From the NCBI RefSeq assembly GCF_021869535.1, contig NW_026262581.1:79422001-79486000 (forward strand): 64,000 nt of DNA, written 5' to 3'. Positions 3,508 through 64,000 of the stretch are shown one piece after another. The translations under genes and the position numbers were made by a program. Numbering within the stretch: position 1 is the stretch's first letter; every line of letters starts with the position of its first letter. The notes below the pieces were generated by a model. That model ran no database searches. It was not told the origin of the DNA and worked only from the letters and a program-made list of their open reading frames with translations. Source of the stretch: Mytilus californianus (Eukaryota).

Positions 3508-3665
3508 GAATGTGTCTGAGGATACGAATGCCCCGCTCAAGCTTTGCAACAAAAAGGGAAAGATGGAAAGATGGAATGATGGATAGACCGAAAGACAGAA
3601 AGACGGAAGGAAGGACAGTCAAGGGTAACACTTAATGCCCCTGTCGTCTACAGCGGGGGCATAAA
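3508..3665 (-). mobile_element. Very short Helentron/DINE-like (HINE) element
   Basis: Sub-terminal inverted repeats ATGCCCC(C)GC at both ends, head palindrome gcccctgtcgtctacagcgggggc, a GGAA/GACA microsatellite and a terminal hairpin. Confidence 0.65.
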
Positions 3666-5805
3666 GAAATGTATTGCTATAAAACATAAAACTAACCATA
3701 CAGCATTATCAAACTGGCATTATATTCTAAAATGATATTTTAAAATTTTGCTTGAAACAATTTCTATGGCATAAAAAGACCATTTCACAATAAATATGTA
3801 CACAACACACCTACCTGAGAGAGGGAGTAACTCTTGAAAATTCAAGGAGAAGGCAAATACTTTTCAGATTAATAATAGGAATTAACAAACTACTCATGTA
3901 ATGTGAGAAATTAAGTGATCCATTGTTGGTGTTTAACACAACTATCAGCACACTTGGCTTTATCAGTCAGACAGTTAGTATTGGTGGAGTAAGTTAGAGT
4001 ACTTTGAGAGAACTACAACCTTTCACAGGCATTCCTAGTCAAAAGAAATCTGAATCGAATGTGAAAGAAGATTGAAACAAAAAAGTGCTTCTGCTGAGGA
4101 ATCCAATGATTGAAATTGAAACAGTGTTTTTATGGACTTGTTAAACCTATAGGATAATAAAATCATATACATTTTCTGTTAAAAATGATGGAAAGATATC
4201 CATGGAGTCTAAACTTTAACATTAAATTCTTTGCCACTTCCATGACTATTCCAAGCTCAGCCTATATGTTGACATTTTGTTTTTATGTCAAGAAATCAAA
4301 TCGTTTTTGTTAACTAGCATTATAGTGAATATATACTTTGCCATTGTTTGAGTAAACCTATTATGAGATGAAGTAGCCCTAACAGAGTAGACTCATTTAT
4401 AGTTAACAGCGCTTCCTTGTTGGTTTAATTGAAACATGCATCAATTTTCATTTAGACATTTTCAAACAGACAGCAAAGACCTCACTAAGCTGTGTAAAAA
4501 ACAACCTGTCACATATAATATTCAAATCGTCTTAAAACTGGATGACATATTCCAGCAGACCATTAAGTTACATCTTAATAAATAGATTAGTGTCAGTTGA
4601 AGGTGTACTCAATTAAAATCATTATCATTTTCTACATGTTATAATTTTTTATTTCATTTTTCTGGCAATTTATTCAATTGAAATAATCAATTCAATGACA
4701 AGTAATAAGGTGGCTCCCAAATGGTCAAATCCAACCTGTGACCTTTTGGGGTTTGAAGAGCAACTTTGCAATCTGACATCTCATTTAAAAGGACCTGAAT
4801 CCAAACTTTAACAATTTTCAAAACACAGGATCAGATCAGTGAAGAACTGCATAGGTTTAAGTTGGCTTAAAAGTGACATGGTGACCTGAGGCAATTTTAA
4901 AATGGACCCTGTGACCTAAGGTTGGTCCTCTACTGGGGCCCCAATAAGAATACAAATACATCAATACAGCTTTAAATTGTTCTGTTTGGTAATACATTTA
5001 AGTACTATTTACACAGACAGAAAAGATGCTAATAGATGCATACCAAATTACAAGCTATTAAATATGTCTTTTCTGAAAGTAATCCGATCTGATAATTAAG
5101 CCAATGTGTTTGCATCAAGGGCCTGTTATTTGAATAAGCTATGCCATTATGGTCTTAATTAAAACATTTTATGTGGAGAAAATTTCATTAAAATCTCAAA
5201 TGAACAACAATTTATTTAAAAGAATAGCTTTTTCACAGTTTGATTAAAACACAGTGTCTTGTTCAAATACCATGTACAAGTGCCAATATGTGATTTTTAG
5301 TCGCAGTTGATCAGTCAATTAACAGGATGAAGTATTAAATCGTGGATTTCCCATAAATACCATTAAATAATTTGATTTGAATCTTATGTAAGTCAGTGAA
5401 AAAACATCAGAAATTTGATTACAATACAAAACACATCAATAAATTATGAACCTGGAACAAAATGTGAAAGAAGAATATTGATTTCCTCAAAACATACAAC
5501 GTCAATTATTGACAAGGTATATACATAGATTATACAGAATGAAGCAATTGAAATGTAATGTTCGTTAGGATTTTAAAAAATGCATTGAAACATATGCTCT
5601 AGAGAACGTTAAACAAAAGACACCACAACGGTTTTTTTTTTTCAGTGATGAAATATTCAATGGTGAGTCAGCAACAACTAAGCAGAAAATTTTCGACAAA
5701 TGGCTCTCCTTAGAAGTATCTTTTCATTGATACTTAATAATTCAGTAAAATAGAATTGCTTTCTGAGTTCTAAATAATGAAAAATTGAAAAACCTGAAAT
5801 CAGAA

Positions 5806-13045: not shown

Positions 13046-16000
13046 CTGCATAGTATAAAAATGACAAATTACAAAAACAAATACCTGAAACTTGCACCAT
13101 AGATTTTTTTAAACATTGTATTCTCCAAAAATATTATCTTGAGCAAAGCTGTTGATGTTATTCCAGAAATATGTGTTTTATGCTCTTTGACTTCTATCAT
13201 ATGTTTACAACACATGATTTAAGTAGCTATCACCCGATTTTTATTGTATCATTTAAGTAGTGTTGGCTTGGCAACTAAGGTCTTAGAAAAAGAATTAACA
13301 GTTCCTTATTCTCAAATTAAGGTATCTTGTAATTTTGGTATGACTTCAGATTGCCTTACTGTTAACCAATTTATTTTTGTGAATACTTTGTTTCTCTATT
13401 ACCCTTTATTTTCTTGATTTTCTAATTTTCTTGATGCATTTATATAAAAGAATATAGATATAGAAGATAAAATTTTACAAAATCGAGACAATTTATATGT
13501 GCACTATTTTCCTACTCATGAAAGTCACGAAAATAAATGATTCACGAACATTAGTTGGTTTACAGTATTTTGAAAGAACTTGTCATTTAAGTGGTTCCAT
13601 GAAACTAGCCTCATCATGACTTTGTATCTATACAACAGCCAGTTCAATGTCTATTATAGCTGTCTAAGTTTTCTGTTGTTGACTTTAGTATACTCTTGAC
13701 ATTTCTAACCCTAACCTACAGAGCTCTGATGAGGTGATTCACTTTAATTTATCTTTGGATTCCAGCCACTTTATTGAGATGATTGATACAGTAGATACTG
13801 TGGTGTTTCCCTCAAGGTTACATTCTGAAATCTTGCACTTTTGATCTTTACTTTTATAATGAAATGGTTCTGTTAGATTCATTTGTTTGGAAGGTAAATC
13901 AAATATTGCTGAAATCATACCACATCTTCTTATTTTTATATTTCTATACACATTTACACATTTTTGAGGAGCATCATTTAAAAAAAACAACTAGTTTTGT
14001 TTGTTGTTTTTTTGAACAATTGGAAATAAGGATATGAAGTATATAAAGGTGAAAAATCAAATGAAATACGAAGAATCAACCAATATATTATAGAAACTAG
14101 GCTTAAATTGCTGTGGTTCATCAAGAGTTTCTGCATGGTCTTCACTGATGAACTTTTGATATCATATCTTATGGCATGCTGAAAGGGCCAACCTTTGATC
14201 AATATTATGAAAATTAATAAAAATGAGTGTGGATATAAGATTCTATCTGTTTTTTAATGAAATAGCTTTTGATTGGAAATATATACTGTGTAACTCCATA
14301 TAATGTGTAGCACCTGGAGCCTTAACCTTTTGAAACCTTGAACTCAGGTTATCAAATTATTCTCCCAGGAAATCTATTTAAAAGGGAAAATTCAATTCAT
14401 TTGACAAACTTTTAAATTTCCATATAGATTTATTTCTTGTCACATTTTGTATCCTCAGAAATGATGTTGAAAAAGCAGTCAATAATTATGACAGCCTAAA
14501 TTAAAAATATACTATAATATCCTTTAGAAAATGGTATGAAACCACATCAAAGCAAGCTGGTTTAGGCATGTAGAGAGAACAAGGATAATGCATATGGACA
14601 AGATAAAACATTAATTATTCCCTTGTTAAGAATAAATTGAGATGTTGGGTTTATTTCAATGAGACAGCAATCAAAAAGGTAGACTCAAGCTTAATTTCAG
14701 TTCCTGATTATTTTGTTTCTTTTATAACCCCTTTTCAAATGTTCTGTTATAAACAAGTGTTTGCCAGTATACTAAGTTACTAACACCGAGTGATCATTAC
14801 CCTGGGGCAGTCAGTTAACACATAACAGATTGTGTCTAAAGAGATTGTTTGTGGAAGAGGATAAATTGTAGAAAGTCTACCTAGTATCTGGACGTAAAGA
14901 GGTCAACATAGAGTTTTCAACAATAGACAAGTTCTATACAATATGTAAAGGTTGAAAATAGCCCAAATCAAAGTTGGAATTAAATTTAACAAAGACCATA
15001 CGCCATCAATTCCACATTCCCTAAACTTGTTTATTTCATTTTCAATCTTAAAAATATCTGCAATTGTATGACTAACAACTGACAACATTTGGTTTTTTTT
15101 TTTAACTTTGTGCTTGAGGTAAAATTAACATGTGCTATACAAGAAATTTGTGCAATTATTTTTGTGTTTAGATAATCATCCTTCAGACTAAAATAGCTTC
15201 GTTTCTTAATATAAACAGGGATGTTACAACCACTAATTATTGTGGTAAAACTTGAGAATATTCCAAAATAACAATTCAAGATGCAAGAATTCCAAAAATC
15301 CAAAATAACACCCAAAATTGATTTCATTGCATGAAATTGTACAAAAATTAAAGAGTAGATAAAATGTATACTTAAGAAGATAATGGCTTACAACTTTTAC
15401 ATGGTACATGTAGTCTGAAATTAAACATGGATATCCAGTTACTAAAACATTATCTGATCATATCTGCAACCTCCATTACCCAAGCTGTCAGTGATCAACT
15501 TCAATCATAACATGCCAAAATACATCTATAACCCTACCTGTTTTTAAGAGCTTATCCGAGGAAACATGGATGAATTGTACACACATTCCAACACAAACAT
15601 AACGGTTTAATTAGCACTAGTCATCAACACAAACACTTAGATCACCTATTAATTAGATTTTTTTTATAGATCCAGGGTAATAATCCATATCTAATATCGC
15701 AACATTAATAATTCCATTGGCAAGGTCTGCCTGCAACAGACTGTGGAAAATGCTCAAATTTTTACAACCTGGCAATCATTCTAAATTTAGCTGACACATT
15801 GATGAAAAACAGTAGATTTTCCAATCATCTAATTTAATTAAAACACTCTACTGTAGCTGGAGAAATGATTGTCTTCGGTTAATGGGTTAACTCTCATTCC
15901 CAATATAATCTGTGTTAAACAGACTGATTCCTAGAGAGGACTAGGAAAGCACTGTTCTTATTACTGCCTTTTGTGTACACAAACATGTATTGAGATTTCC

Positions 16001-56584: not shown

Positions 56585-57235
56585 GTTCTAACAGTTTTTC
56601 ACTTTCCACTTTCCTTTGTTTTGGTTTATGCGTAATTGTTTATATTTTGCAGGAAGTAGATAAAAAAATTTCGGCACTGAAGATTATAATTCTGTTTGAT
56701 TGGTGTTCGTAAAATTAGAATATTTTTGATTGGTTAAAAAAATGTATCAACAAATACATGTGATTCAGTCACATGGCTTTGTTTACATCATTCTTTGACA
56801 ATTATAATGTGTCTGTTGCTAGTGGTTTGAATATTTGTTAATATGCCAAAAGTTGTAATTGTAGAAGAATTGGTGCACTGTTTTAGGATATTCACATCAA
56901 ATTTTAATAAACATATTCCCGCCTGTAACATGATTTAACCCATGATCAGACATATCTTTTCAAACAACCTTTCACTAAACCAGAGGATATGACAACGTTG
57001 TGTCAATTAGCATGATCACTGCCGATAATTAATCGGTGTAATAGTGAATAATCGGGAGCTAGATAAGTACTGATTTGTGCCAATGTAAAATTAAACATTA
57101 GGACTGGGAGATAATAAGGGTTACAAACACATACCACATCACCATGCAGCGACTACAATCCCGTTTCACTTTTTTTTATTAAATAAACAAAGATTTAAAC
57201 AAACTATAGGATGAAAAACAGAAATATTTATGTAA

Positions 57236-57370
57236 AATTGAGAATGGAAACGGGAATGTGTCAAAGAGACAACATCCCGACCAAAGAGCAGAAAACAGCC
57301 TAAGGCCACCAATGGGTCCTCAGTCAACACAGCGAGAAAATCCCGCACCCGGAGACGGGCTTCAGCTGGT
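57236..57370 (+). mobile_element. SINE-like repeat (GAATGTGTCAAAGAGACAAC family)
   Basis: A reverse-complement copy lies at about 49470-49555. Confidence 0.7.
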
Positions 57371-58284
57371 AATTGTTATTGTGTCCTTCAGAAGATTCGT
57401 AAATGATTTTTTTTCTATAGCAAGGCTCACCATTTTATAATACCGGAGACAGTCGGACTGACCATTCTGAATTATCAGTTTATCGTTTGATTATCTGTGT
57501 TTGGTTAACTAAAGTAGTCTTAAAATTTAATGTCCTTCTTTTTCGCATTTCAATGATTAGAGTAAAAAAAAGACATCAATGCTTGTCCGCAAACAGTACC
57601 ATCAAAGTGTCTGGAAAGCCTCTGTGTACTCTGATTGCATTCCAGTGCCGACTGTTTCGATCGATTGTTGCCAAAATCATTTACGTTGTAACCTGTTAAT
57701 ATTTCTCTGGGATATAAGTGCTTAATGGTAATTCCAGAGTTAGTTCGTCGCTTATGCTTTTAACCTTATATTCTGGAACTTTTCAAGCTACTCCTTGATA
57801 TCAAATACCACGGGAAACAAGGGTTTGGGTCTTGGATTCACTGCCAAGAAAATGGGTTAACTACAGCCGTTTGTAGATGACTTACTTCTTCTATTCTAGT
57901 GGTTCTTTCGCATGACCGTATAACTTTTACTAATTGTCTATTCTTAGAACAGACTGGAGTTCAGTACATGGCCTATATACATACACACCTCACGTGAGAA
58001 AAATACATTAATTCATAACTGATTTAGTAGAGATATTTCACATTTTTACATTAATAGTTTGTTTACGTATTTGATGCCGCACTGTTGTATGTTCGACATA
58101 CGTACGATCAAAGCAATTGGTATACGATTTATTGTATCAAAAATTAACTGCACTCATGTACCCATTCATGCCACTATATCATGTGTTCTGTAAGCCGACG
58201 AGGAAAGGCATTACCCGAATAACGATGGATCATGTACTGTGCTTCAACCTTAGATTAAGCCAAAATTTTCTATATTTTTATATA

Positions 58285-58418
58285 GCCTTGTAGATCGAAA
58301 GTATGGTCTAAGGCGTTGGACCCAGTGCAATTGTCGTTGGTGTCTCAATAGCTTAAATCCGAATCCCACCGAGGGAAGAGTATAGATTTGCAAATGTACT
58401 ACATTGTTAGGCTATAAG
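58285..58418 (+). mobile_element. Degenerate tRNA-derived SINE head
   Basis: A-box-like TGGTCTAAGG (58304-58313) and B-box-like TCCGAATCCC (58358-58367); no intact cloverleaf. Confidence 0.5.
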
Positions 58419-59798
58419 TAAATATAAAATCATAATCAAACTTTACGCCCACGTTCATTTCTCTTATATAAAGTGACCTTACAATCTTATAACTAGGTGT
58501 ATTGATACATTAAGTAGGAGAGTGGTACAGCTTCCGCACCAGTAACCGTCAGTAAATGCCTTTGTGAATATATGCAACGTCCCACCGTGTCTGTAGTATG
58601 TATATACTTTTTTTATCTAGATTTGAGTCCATTGCATCTGTTAGTATAAATTCATCGGAAGTAATGTCATGATGATGGCTAGTGCGTTTTTTTTTATGTT
58701 TATTATATTTTATTTACATGTGTTTTCCAACTCTGCAAAATCACATCTGGTAAAGTTAGAAGATTTCACGCCATTTGTACGTACATGTTTGCAATGTTTA
58801 ATTTAACCTTGAATACGAAAAAAAATGCTTCTCAAGGGGTCTTATATCAATTTTGATTAAGGGAAAAGCTAGGACATATTTATTAATATGAGAAAACATG
58901 TAATAATCAAAATATACCGCGAACTAGTGCAACAACTCAATCATTGGAATGCGGATCTGTCAAATTCATATAAAAGTTCAGTTTACCTGCATGCAGTTTG
59001 ATTTTGGGTCCAAATTCAGTTCTTTAATTAATACTAAATCTCATGTTAGCAATATACATGTATATGATATATAGAGCACATTGATGCTTTCTGTTGAAAT
59101 TGATCGAACAACATTCAAATATTTCTTTCTTTGGTAGTAATCCAAATTGAACTATATTGCAGCGGATGCATTCTTTCTGTGATAATCATTTTCAATATGT
59201 CCCCTTTCGTGGTAAATAAGAGGCAACTGAACAGTAGTTTACTGGTGTTCAAATCGCATAAATCCATTTTGAAAATACAAATCAAGGTAAAAAAATAAAA
59301 ACTGAGGAAATCGCTTGAAATCCAAAAGGAGCAAGACCGGTGCGTCTCCTGGTCATTTGGTTATATATTGATTTTGAGGTCGGATGTTGCACACTTCAAA
59401 ACGATGATAACTAGTGATCACTAGTAAATTGAAATATGAGCTGTTTGATATTAGTGAAGACGTTTCAAACGTTTTTAACGATGGCTTTAAATTTATATTG
59501 ATTTTTTGTTGTTGTTGTTTTTGTTAATGCAAGGATGGGTGGGTGGGTGGGGTTAGAATAGTTTTATCTGGTTCTAAAGAAATATAATTGCAACATCGGT
59601 GTTGCTTAAGTAAGTGACTGGATAACACAAAATATCCTGTAACAACAAGTTATGTCCTTTATCTTATCCACTGCAACACAGATTATGTATCTGCATATTG
59701 TATAAATCTTATACGGTTTTATAAAAGTTAGTTTATAATTAGATACTTGTCACATAATCTTTGTACCTTTGAATATTCATAGCACGTTCACCACAAAG

Positions 59799-59891
59799 TA
59801 TATAAAGGCTCAGGAGAGTTGTAGTCAACATTTTATTACGAATAAACTGTAATCGACATCAACTTTTTGCACAGGAACACTTTAACATAAG
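59799..59891 (+). promoter_or_regulatory. Candidate SELENOP TATA box and non-coding first exon
   Basis: TATATAAA at 59799-59806, Inr-like TAGT about 25 nt downstream, and a strong donor AAG|GTAAGA at 59892. The coding exon begins with an acceptor (62370) only 10 nt before the ATG, so an upstream exon is required. Confidence 0.55.
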
Positions 59892-61837
59892 GTAAGAATG
59901 TTAGTTTTCAATCCATGTAGCATTTAGCTTTCTCGGGGCGTGATAAAATACATCCGAACATCATATAAAGTCTTAAAATCTGATTTCAGATGAATCGTAT
60001 ATAAATATTTCTTCAAATTCTACAAGTGTAAATAATTTAAAACACACGACCACTCAAATAAGGCAATTTCAGAAAGCTTCTTGTGTCATGAAAGTATACT
60101 TACTATTAGGCTCTTCGTTCGAGCAGAATTATTATGGTGTCAGATAGCTCGTCCAATTGCCCTTTCACACTTAGTAAGATAAGTCAATTTCGACTTTTAC
60201 TGATGTTTATGAAATATGAACAATGTAAGGATTGATGGAATAGCGCTCCTTTCCATTTGATTGTTGCCTGACTTGTCGTTTTGGGTATTTTCAGTGCTTG
60301 CCTTTCCTATCAGAAGTGTCTTGACGGAATCTATTGAACCAATGATTCTTCATGGTTATGCTGTAGTCATCTCTTCGGAAATCAAATGGCTTTTTTTTTT
60401 GGTTTGCAATTAGGGAAAATCGTCGTAGACGACCACGATAAAGCAACACGATGAGTGTACTAGTGGAGAAGGGTCTGTCTGGCCCCGTTTTTTTGTGGGG
60501 TTACCTTTAATTTTCGGTATAGCATTTTTCTTTTTTTTTGTGGCCATGGTGTTGTTTGCACTTCTTAGGTTTATAATTTTGATTTCCCTTTGTATCTATC
60601 TTCCTCTCTATTTAGGTATAAATTTACTGTTAATTACTCGTATATAAAATTTTCTTAGCCAGCTATAATTAAGTATTTCGAACAAACATGGACTATATGG
60701 TAGTAACTTGGATTGATTTTAAAAGAAAAAAATACTTGGAAACTTTTACTAAATTATGAATACACAGCCCTTATAAAACGTCGAGTTCTTACATAAACAA
60801 CACACGAGTTTACAATATTTCACAAACCAGGCATGTTGTCAAGATGAGCGAAACATTAACAATTTAGTTAAGCACCTTATAAGTTTTATATCACAAATCC
60901 TATTGTACTTCCTTATTATCTAAATCAAGGACAGGTGTAAAAGAGACGTTGAACTTGTTTTGCACATATTTATCAGCTGGAGTTTACACTATATAGATAA
61001 CAAGATAAACAATAAAAAGATGAATAATTTATGTGATTTTTAGAATATTGCACAACAATTAAATAACATCATTTAATTTGGACGAAAAGGAGTGCTTACA
61101 TCGTTTTCGAGCTAATTTACGAAGACGTCAATTTAAGAGCCACCAAAAATGATTATGTATTGTCATTAAAAAATAATGCTGCTTGATTTTCGGTTATTTA
61201 TCAAGGAGTCCGTATCACGTGGCTGTTACATGTATAACTAATTGCGTTTATATATTTCAATTTTTTAGTTTGTGGAATATTCTCAAACTGTTTATATTTA
61301 TATAATGTCCTACAATAACGATTTTTCGACATGGTTTTTATCTTCGATTTAAGATCGGTATTGAAATAACTTTTTCAATTATCAAAATCTTAAGAATGAT
61401 TTTCAAGTGATATGCTTTCGGCTTACATGCTTTCCATTTCTGGGCTCTCTATTTAACCAAGTGTTTAAACTAAGTTCTATTGTGGCGGCCATCTTTGATT
61501 TCAGATCGAAATCGAATTATAATTTCTATGAAGGATCTGAATATCACAGTTCAACGTTTTCTCGTAGATGTTCACAAACGTTTACAATGGATGGAACTGC
61601 ATGACATTAACCGCTATCATAACACTAAGTGACATGTTAGCTAAAACGATGATGCGTATGTTTATCTGTCGAAAGTCTACACAGAGGTATAAATGTTTTG
61701 ATTGTAACCATTACACAATACTTTATTTATTTTTTTTATTTTGAAGAAGGTTACACAGTTAGTTACATAATCTAACTTCTATGAGTCTCAGTCATAGAAA
61801 AGCATTATCTAAACACAAAATTGGTCAACGAATTGCT

Positions 61838-62177
61838 TAAATAAACTCATCATAAATACCAGGATTGAACTTTTGTATTTGCGCCAGACGCGCGTTTCGT
61901 CTACAAAAGACTCATCAGTGACGCTCGAATAAAGATAAAGTTAAAAAGACGAAATAAAGTACGAAGTTGAAGAGCATTGAGGACCAAAATTTCCTAAAGG
62001 TTTTGCCAAATACAGCTAAGGTAATCTATTCCTGAGGTAGAAAAGCCTTAGTTTTTAAAAAATGTAAAGTTTTGTAAACAGTTAATTTATAATTATGACC
62101 ATATCAATGATAATTCATGTCAAACAGAAGTGCTGACTACTGGGCTGGTGATACCATCGGGGATTAAAAACTCAACC
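61838..62177 (-). mobile_element. Retrozyme-like / Penelope-associated non-autonomous repeat monomer carrying the hammerhead
   Basis: About 340-bp non-coding segment containing the ribozyme. It resembles the abundant mussel hammerhead repeat as recalled, not searched. Boundaries are approximate. Confidence 0.6.
61881..61924 (-). ncRNA. Minimal type I hammerhead ribozyme
   Basis: The minus strand reads GCGUCA-CUGAUGA-GUC(uuuugua)GAC-GAAA-CGCGC-GUC-UGGCGC. Stem I is GCGUCA:UGGCGC, stem II is GUC:GAC, both core boxes are intact, stem III is the palindrome ACGCGCGU, and the cleavage triplet is GUC (61889-61887). Confidence 0.88.
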
Positions 62178-62380
62178 AAATTTACTGTAAAATATATAGA
62201 CATTGTTGCAATGCTTACCTCTCCAAATTAATAATTACTTTTATTATGTTACCCATTATGTTTTGTTACAAAATTCCATTTTGTAATGTTTTTGTTGTAA
62301 AACAAACAAAAAAATCTTTCAGTAAGCTTAATCACAGATAAATTTAGTCAACTCCATTCTTTTCTTTCAGAAGAGAAATT

Positions 62381-62574
62381 ATGCAGAGCCCCGGTGTCTT
62401 AACCGGGTTGCTCGCTGCTGCTTTACTAGTCAGCGTGTCTGGAAGGTTCTGTCAGTACCCACCAACCTGGCGAACCACCAGTGAAGATCAGCCAATGTTG
62501 AACACGCGTGGCAAAGTAACAGTAGTGGCACTACTGTTGGCTACATGACCCATGTGTCAGCATCAAGCGGCAGG
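62381..62574 (+). CDS. SELENOP: Selenoprotein P, first coding exon; signal peptide plus in-frame UGA (Sec56) at 62546-62548
   Basis: MQSPGVLTGLLAAALLVSVSGRFCQYPPTW...QPMLNTRGKVTVVALLLAT-U-PMCQHQAA matches the SELENOP pattern CxxPPxW...GxVTVVALLxAS-U-xxC. Acceptor tttctttcag and donor GTATGT. Confidence 0.93.
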
Positions 62575-62839
62575 GTATGTGTTATCATTTATTAGATATA
62601 TATTGAATGTTGTTACATGTAAATCATTTCAGTCTATTAATTCATAAATAATAGAAATTAAAAGTTTGTGTATTTACATTTTTGTTTAATTTTGTCAAAT
62701 ATTCGCGAGGGAGATGAATAGTGACACACGTTTGAGATGTAGGTTATGGGGGTAAACAAGTGGGATTACGGGATATAGGGGGTACAAATAGGTGGTATCA
62801 GGAAAAAAGTGGGAAATGGGAACAAAGGCAAAAAAATAA

Positions 62840-63154
62840 ACTGTTGACTTCATACAAAATATCATTGATCTATCACAAGTAGATCCTATCAAACTATTTT
62901 GAGCAGAAAACTTAACTTTGAAAATTGCGGATTAATTCAAAGTCACTGGACCATGTCCTAGGGGACAGAGCCTCAAAATAGTCGTCAAACTGATATGTAC
63001 TGATAGTAATGCAGCTTTATATTAAATATCACAAGTAGTTCCTATCAAACTAACTTAAGCAGAAAACTTAACTATTGTTGACGCCGTCGCCGTCGCCGGA
63101 AAAGCAATCCTTATGTCTCGCTTTCCGCGACTTTCGTCGCAGGCGAGACAAAAA
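62840..63154 (-). mobile_element. HINE-like fragment in SELENOP intron 2
   Basis: Head tgtctcgc...gcgacttt cgtcgc aggcgagacaaaaa with GCC/GTC microsatellite; one duplicated internal unit. Confidence 0.65.
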
Positions 63155-63261
63155 CGGGATTTGGGAAATTAGCACCTCGTGTCACCCCCCCCCCCCCCCT
63201 AATTTCATTCGCCTTTATTCATTAAGAATATTTCAAATAAATATATGTTTGTACAATGTAG

Positions 63262-63459
63262 GCTGGAGACTATTCGTCAAGAATACATCGCCCAGGGCCG
63301 TACAGAAATCAGTTTTATGATTATCAATTCCAAAGAAGTCCCTGAACAAATTGGACAACTTTCCAGCAGAACTAACTTTCCTGTGTACCAAGATACAAAC
63401 GCTACAAACATATGGAACAAACTAAATGGCGGGAAAGATGACGTATTGATATATGATAG
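63262..63459 (+). CDS. SELENOP: Selenoprotein P coding exon 2
   Basis: (G)LETIRQEYIAQGRTEISFMIINSK...FPVYQDTNATNIWNKLNGGKDDVLIYD(R) contains the SELENOP motifs PVYQ and WxxLxGxKDDxLIYDR. Phase 2/2. Confidence 0.95.
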
Positions 63460-63911
63460 GTAAGAACTGAAAAATGCAATATCATCATGTAAAGATATTG
63501 ACGTGTGTAAAATTAAAAACATAAATCATGAATTATGAAACCATAGCAGTTTATAATTTAGATATATATAGTTACATACATTGTGAGCAACTGAAAGCCA
63601 TCCAAACAAAGGACCTATTTTAGTTTCCTAGTTGAATAGCTATTGCATGAAGACTTGATAGCATTAACGTTAAACGCGCGAATTAAGAAAAATATTTCCC
63701 ATCCAATGAAGCTAGAATCACATTCAATATAAATCTACTTGCGCATATTGATCATTATCAGAGCTCTTTGTATTGCTTATTTTGTAACAGTGAAATGTGT
63801 GCGAACACGGCAATGGTAATTTATATATCTTACTACTTCTATATATATATATATGCAAAAGGGATGCGATACACGTTAGGCAAACATATAGTTTTCTATT
63901 TTTGTTCACAG

Positions 63912-64000
63912 ATGCGGCAAATTAGTTTACTTTATACCGTTTCCATCAAGCTTGTTGCGTTACCATCTTACTGATTGGGCGATCCGTACTGCATACGATA
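63912..64000 (+). CDS. SELENOP: Selenoprotein P coding exon 3 (truncated by window end)
   Basis: (R)CGKLVYFIPFPSSLLRYHLTDWAIRTAYD matches RCGRLVYHLxxPxSxL...AIxxAY. Acceptor tttgttcacag. Confidence 0.93.

Follow-up and report, generated by a model that had tools for sequence, protein, structure and literature searches.

The stretch of DNA analyzed here, which we call the window, comprises 64,000 nt of the Mytilus californianus genome (NCBI RefSeq assembly GCF_021869535.1, contig NW_026262581.1, positions 79,422,001 to 79,486,000 of the forward strand), and the gene of interest lies at its 3' end. A reading frame on the + strand opens at ATG 62381 and contains an in-frame TGA as codon 56 (62546-62548; + strand). 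This codon, hereafter UGA1, is conserved among relatives and read through in their cDNAs, and is assigned here to selenocysteine (Sec). The peptide encoded up to UGA1 begins with a 21-residue hydrophobic leader, followed by RFCQYPPTW...VTVVALLLAT. The leader is a predicted signal peptide (M1-G21, 62381-62443, + strand; read from the translation, with the cleavage site placed by eye) in which the hydrophobic core LTGLLAAALLVSV comes after a short polar N-terminus and ahead of SG|RFC, a layout common to all relatives. Directly after the TGA come P-M-C, giving a U-x-x-C motif; this U-P-M-C redox motif (62546-62557, + strand) is invariant in all relatives. The frame then runs through P-M-C-Q-H-Q-A-A-G with no further stop up to a consensus donor, GG|GTATGT, whose GT is at 62575-62576.

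The ATG exon (62371-62574, + strand) comprises 10 nt of 5'UTR, the start codon, the predicted signal peptide, the first part of SelP_N, the codon UGA1 and a phase-2 donor; it aligns to positions 140-308 of cDNA L003 from a relative, with the alignment ending at the donor. The intron that follows (62575-63261, + strand; GT at 62575, AG at 63260-63261) is skipped by the blocks in which the relatives' cDNAs align. Within this intron, a 47-nt sequence occurs twice in direct orientation (62871-62917 and 63027-63073), with 91% identity and a spacing of 156 nt; it is probably a small interspersed repeat, and a GC-rich stretch and a C13 run at 63187-63200 follow it. The second coding exon (63262-63459, + strand; G-LETIRQEY...VLIYD-R) is bounded by a pyrimidine-rich acceptor and a GTAAGA donor (GT at 63460-63461), corresponds to the middle of SelP_N and aligns to positions 306-504 of cDNA L003. 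After another intron skipped by the cDNA blocks (63460-63911, + strand; GT at 63460-63461, AG at 63910-63911), the last exon begins at 63912 with R-CGKLVYFIPFPSSLLRYHLTDWAIRTAYD... and its first 89 nt (63912-64000, + strand), which share 86% nucleotide identity with the relatives' cDNAs, end with the window. Both coding junctions split a codon into 2 nt and 1 nt, encoding Gly and Arg, respectively. For the phases to fit, translation has to pass the TGA, and the sequence-only reading, made before any database search, had placed the TGA and numbered its codon correctly.

The three exon pieces were matched to Pfam separately, without joining them or reading through the stop. All three match SelP_N (PF04592), a thioredoxin-like N-terminal domain: the ATG-exon piece covers profile positions 3-35 (E 9e-8, 32.2 bits), the second coding exon covers 47-116 (E 1.9e-9, 37.7 bits), and the 29-aa piece from the last exon covers 118-145 (E 3e-3, 17.2 bits). 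Against the profile cut-off of 23.2 bits, the first two pieces pass on their own and the 29-aa piece falls below. The matches are colinear across the three pieces, and the 11 profile positions left without a match, between 35 and 47, correspond to the T-U-PMCQHQAAG-G segment that spans UGA1 and the first junction. Two claims of the sequence-only reading are borne out: that the TGA occupies the position of the first Sec of selenoprotein P (SELENOP), which is the UxxC site of SelP_N and a TGA in the orthologues, and that frame and homology continue, in fitting phases, through two more exons. A search of PDB sequences with the middle exon (63262-63459) matched no solved structure; the same exon is 45% identical to a protein from the oyster Saccostrea echinata named "selenoprotein Pb-like" by its source. 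The window gene is the mytilid orthologue of the Sec-rich SELENOP described from bivalves.

When cDNA contigs of two related species are aligned to the window, they match it in three blocks and no more (62405-62576, 63261-63459 and 63908-63999), whose ends fall at the predicted exon borders. This confirms the splice sites across species; in addition, cDNA L003 compared with genomic contig L004 of the same species reveals the same intron. A chromosome-level Mytilus-type locus (L009; NCBI GCA_036588685.2, CM071702.1) matches the window colinearly, at 73-86% identity, over the whole region between about 57.8 kb (some 4.5 kb 5' of the ATG) and the window end. Upstream in L009 there is a tandem duplication of about 2.6 kb (1039-1721 and 3615-4297; also 2321-2666 and 4897-5235), and the duplicated segment is single-copy in the window (57799-59017).

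The region 5' of the ATG exon bears on where transcription of the gene begins. A TATA-box-like motif, TATATAAAGG (59799-59808, + strand, read directly), is part of the upstream block in which window and L009 are most alike (82% over about 420 nt); it lies 5' of a putative non-coding exon and may have a promoter role. About 85 nt past this motif is a donor, AAG|GTAAGA (GT at 59892-59893), that is also conserved in L009. Two Mytilus gene models (P0008 and P0010) use the same donor and acceptor pair, joining ...TLKHI to RRGTM, and cDNA L003 begins with 101 nt that do not occur in genomic L004 directly 5' of the ATG exon. From the conserved donor, the junction in the two models and the non-contiguity of the cDNA, we infer a short non-coding 5'UTR exon at about 59828-59891 (+ strand; start approximate) and an intron at 59892-62370 (+ strand), whose acceptor, ttttctttcAG (AG at 62369-62370), is 10 nt before the ATG. 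The ATG exon, taken as exon 1 in the sequence-only reading, is therefore probably exon 2. Within the putative first intron, on the minus strand, a type I hammerhead ribozyme (Rfam Hammerhead_1, 61881-61924) was found at 34.0 bits, equal to the Rfam gathering score (E 1e-5), inside a repeat at 61838-62177; similar repeat copies with a hammerhead occur three times in L009 (1941-1984, 4517-4560 and 9609-9652).

To a reader of the window alone, UGA1 is just a stop inside a homologous frame, with no SECIS element in sight, and could have arisen by nonsense mutation, by decay of a pseudogene or through an error in sequencing. The relatives argue strongly against this. A word search with the 55-aa ORF that precedes the TGA returned three clusters only, all of them ORFs of 50-55 aa ending in ...LLLAT, and in every case the contigs of these clusters continue with TGA and then CCN ATG TGT. 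Searching again, now with the ORF that follows the TGA in one of the cDNAs, brought in a set of cDNAs (L010-14), the L009 locus and the Saccostrea echinata protein. Two ORFs of the window itself, that of 55 aa before the TGA and one of 72 aa over the second coding exon, were looked up exactly and matched no contig, transcript or protein. Taken together, TGA is found at the same codon in the window and in five other mytilid lineages (L001, L002, L003/4, L009 and L010), as well as in Saccostrea (L015), where the genome 5' of the annotated Met of the protein reads ...VTVVALLLAS-TGA-P-M-C-Q-Q-Q. The context of UGA1 in these six mytilid lineages and one oyster is invariant, LLLA(T/S)-U-PMCQ, and in none of the relatives compared is the codon replaced by Cys or another residue, which was part of the outcome named by the sequence-only reading as pointing to a nonsense allele or an error. 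The N-terminal piece of the window gene is 89% identical to Mytilus galloprovincialis VDI10810.1, which ends at the TGA; this points to a mussel outside, but close to, that species group.

The sequence past UGA1 is also under purifying selection, as judged from its substitution pattern. Between window and L009, dN is 0.023 and dS 0.169 over 94 codons past the TGA, taken in frame from both downstream exon pieces and pooled; the 8 codons between UGA1 and the donor are conserved, and the last exon begins with 29 codons that encode an identical protein in the two loci. Furthermore, the relatives' cDNAs carry the TGA themselves and continue through 44-46 more. Conservation of the TGA, read-through in cDNAs and selection downstream together rule out a nonsense allele, a pseudogene and a sequencing error, and we give such explanations next to no probability.

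The extent of the frame beyond the window can be followed in the relatives. Among the cDNA contigs, L003 and L008 have a frame of 590 codons (1770 nt) in which TGA occurs 47 times and TAA and TAG never, against 16-22 TAA or TAG in the remaining two frames; L010-13 have 45 in-frame TGA, again with no TAA or TAG. L009 has 45 TGAs in total, 44 of them in a single last exon that begins CGKLVYF..., runs uninterrupted for 1.41 kb and reaches its stop at 13047. The alignment of cDNA to L009 across this exon is one block, and in the relatives the last exon continues without an intron through the whole Sec-rich tail and the 3'UTR. Saccostrea L015 has 48 further TGA after UGA1. Overall, UGA totals are 45-49 per gene in the relatives, with 44-48 beyond UGA1 and no other stop; tail counts from the short-read assemblies are approximate. 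The tail Sec codons occur mostly as U-x-U pairs in the one last exon, and a basic, His-rich stretch follows the SelP_N domain. At the 3' end of cDNA L003, a segment of the Sec-rich coding sequence recurs at positions 2770-2907 (81% to L009 12813-12948), probably an assembly chimera that arose from the repetitive U-x-U modules, and L007 diverges from L003 and L008 in the same zone. The sequence-only reading had pointed out that some molluscan SELENOPs have extremely Sec-rich tails. This holds for the relatives, with their 45-49 UGAs and 3'UTR SECIS.

These frames also bear on the reading of UGA1 as a true stop that separates two ordinary products, a secreted peptide of 55 aa and a protein starting at Met58. 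Public gene models for the Mytilus-type orthologue (P0005 and P0007-P0011, located at L009 10001-11886; a 90% cluster) are built in just this way, and termination at UGA1 would be expected to compete with Sec insertion. P0009 ends at UGA1, and the Met two codons past it opens P0005, P0007 and P0011, which end at the next TGA. P0008 and P0010, in turn, splice out a 14-residue Sec segment, VTVVALLLAT-U-PMC. None of the six extends past the second TGA, and all are wrong at the Sec codon; the differing P0008 and P0010 models mark the whole set as pipeline work-arounds and not as evidence. A product from Met58 would be missing the signal peptide, the domain's first strand and the U of UxxC, and would itself end at the next TGA, which in the L009 frame is about 150 codons on from that Met. 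Frames with 45-47 TGAs and no TAA or TAG, accompanied by SECIS elements, only make sense if UGA is decoded. We thus regard two separate products as very improbable. The sequence-only reading had expected automated annotation to truncate the gene, and the models of the relatives bear this out.

A further alternative is that the window holds a real member of the SELENOP family that is a short paralogue with few Sec codons, rather than the form with about 45. The tail lies outside the window, nucleotide identity between window and relatives is only 73-91%, and few-Sec SELENOP paralogues exist in animals, the "Pb-like" name of the Saccostrea match being a reminder of this. Against it, the L009 locus is colinear with the window not only 5' of the ATG but through all exons and introns, dS between the two is just 0.17, and 29 of 29 codons at the start of the last exon specify the same protein. 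Among Mytilus-type proteins of this length, the search gave a single such cluster. A few-Sec paralogue is accordingly unlikely.

SECIS elements are required in the 3'UTR for this interpretation, and the sequence-only reading had placed them beyond the window. Neither a search with Rfam at the gathering threshold over all 64 kb nor one at E<=1 over 57000-64000 returned a SECIS, in line with that placement; this is expected because the 3'UTR lies past the end of the window. In the relatives' 3'UTRs, Rfam SECIS_1 scores L009 at 34.7 bits, L003 at 33.2 and L010 at 28.6, all short of the gathering score of 35; these matches lie 290-330 nt 3' of the stop (about 290 nt in L009). The 3'UTRs are alignable over about 400 nt only, with poly(A) signals directly after the SECIS. 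The Saccostrea L015 locus has two SECIS matches, at 27.7 and 24.7 bits, both below the gathering score of 35, so that by Rfam the mytilid relatives have one SECIS and the oyster locus two.

A second SECIS in the mytilid 3'UTRs was sought with Rfam at E<=10 and with two scans of our own, which gave one per 3'UTR. Nevertheless, inspection by eye revealed a further block, some 115 nt 3' of the stop, that is conserved in three mytilid relatives (L009 13149-13222, L003 1992-2072 and L010 1870-1946). It has an invariant ATGACG, a helix of 8-9 bp with one compensatory change, AAA at the top of the helix and AC-N-GA on its 3' side, and is a candidate for a proximal SECIS not reported by Rfam SECIS_1. 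A single-SECIS reading of the mytilid relatives was dropped given the presence of this second SECIS-like block.

The predicted folding of the ATG exon beats 200 of 200 shuffles (z = -3.7). RNAalifold predictions across six lineages place two hairpins in it, both on the + strand. The first (62386-62413) has 10 pairs and starts 5 nt past the AUG; 93% of its cells are paired, and 2 of the pairs have changed on both sides. The second (62535-62562) has 11 pairs with UGA1 at the apical loop; 92% of its cells are paired, and 7 of the 11 pairs never vary. For both hairpins together, three pairs are changed on both sides in the six lineages, and 21-35 of 500 shuffles do as well. By eye, the Saccostrea sequence has no second hairpin in the same register. 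The hairpin at UGA1 may be a by-product of the invariant coding sequence for LLLAT-U-PMCQ. That the two hairpins form a mytilid-specific control of ribosome passage at UGA1 is a doubtful proposal, which we put forward tentatively. In oyster SELENOP, a structure at the initiation codon has reportedly been found; control of UGA1 by the two hairpins would, if true, go beyond it.

Taking the evidence together, we hold with high confidence that the last 4.2 kb of the window is the promoter-proximal part of a functional mytilid SELENOP gene in which the TGA encodes Sec. Sec insertion at UGA1 in the M. californianus protein is inferred from the comparisons above, and would proceed as follows. For the full-length product, the TGA at 62546-62548 would not act as a terminator; the 3'UTR SECIS, acting with the tRNA and elongation factors dedicated to Sec, would redefine UGA1 as selenocysteine, creating a redox-active U-P-M-C (UxxC) center. 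Of the last exon the window includes 29 codons, and the tail, stop and SECIS are known from relatives only. By analogy with the colinear orthologues, the final exon would continue for about 1.4 kb with about 44 further UGA-Sec codons, forming a tail for selenium storage or transport, and the 3'UTR after it would measure about 400 nt and contain a clear SECIS along with a probable second one. On the same analogy, the stop would lie about 1.3 kb past 64000 and the distal SECIS about 1.6-1.7 kb past it. The efficiency at UGA1 in oyster is reportedly about 5%. UGA1 would also terminate many ribosomes, and the 55-aa product should therefore exist to some degree as well.

In comparison with the vertebrate protein, the mussel gene has the same domain, the first Sec at the same position in a UxxC motif, and a product that is predicted to be secreted, as the vertebrate protein is; the motif of the mussel gene is U-P-M-C. 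Vertebrate SELENOP also resembles the mussel relatives in having the remaining Sec codons and the SECIS in the last exon and a basic, His-rich stretch after the domain. The human tail has 9 Sec codons, and that of the mussel relatives has 4-5 times more. In bivalve SELENOP, a signal peptide precedes a SelP_N domain that carries the Sec codon of a UxxC motif, as is predicted for the window gene, and the 45-49 UGAs of the relatives match the 46 reportedly present in the oyster gene. The window gene differs from bivalve SELENOP in nothing of kind. Sec-rich bivalve SELENOP has been known since 2019 (Baclaocos et al., 2019, J Mol Biol 431:4381, as cited in PMC8557442), with up to 132 UGAs in molluscs according to the title given there, and the window gene is a case of this known biology.

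Mis-annotated selenoprotein genes in public databases have been documented for vertebrates (PMC12822975; PMC13134290). The same flaws are found here in mussel assemblies, whose models share the classic failures: truncation at the UGA, a start after it, or the UGA spliced out. As dozens of UGAs are already known to be decoded processively in bivalve SELENOP, the present locus opens no new question, and its main value is the correction of annotation. Pipelines that treat TGA as a stop truncate, split or mis-splice SELENOP, as in the related Mytilus assemblies, and the main selenium-carrying protein of the mussel is consequently lost from proteomes and expression studies. Mussels serve as sentinels of pollution and of selenium and mercury, and a correct SELENOP model with about 45 Sec would therefore be of practical use.
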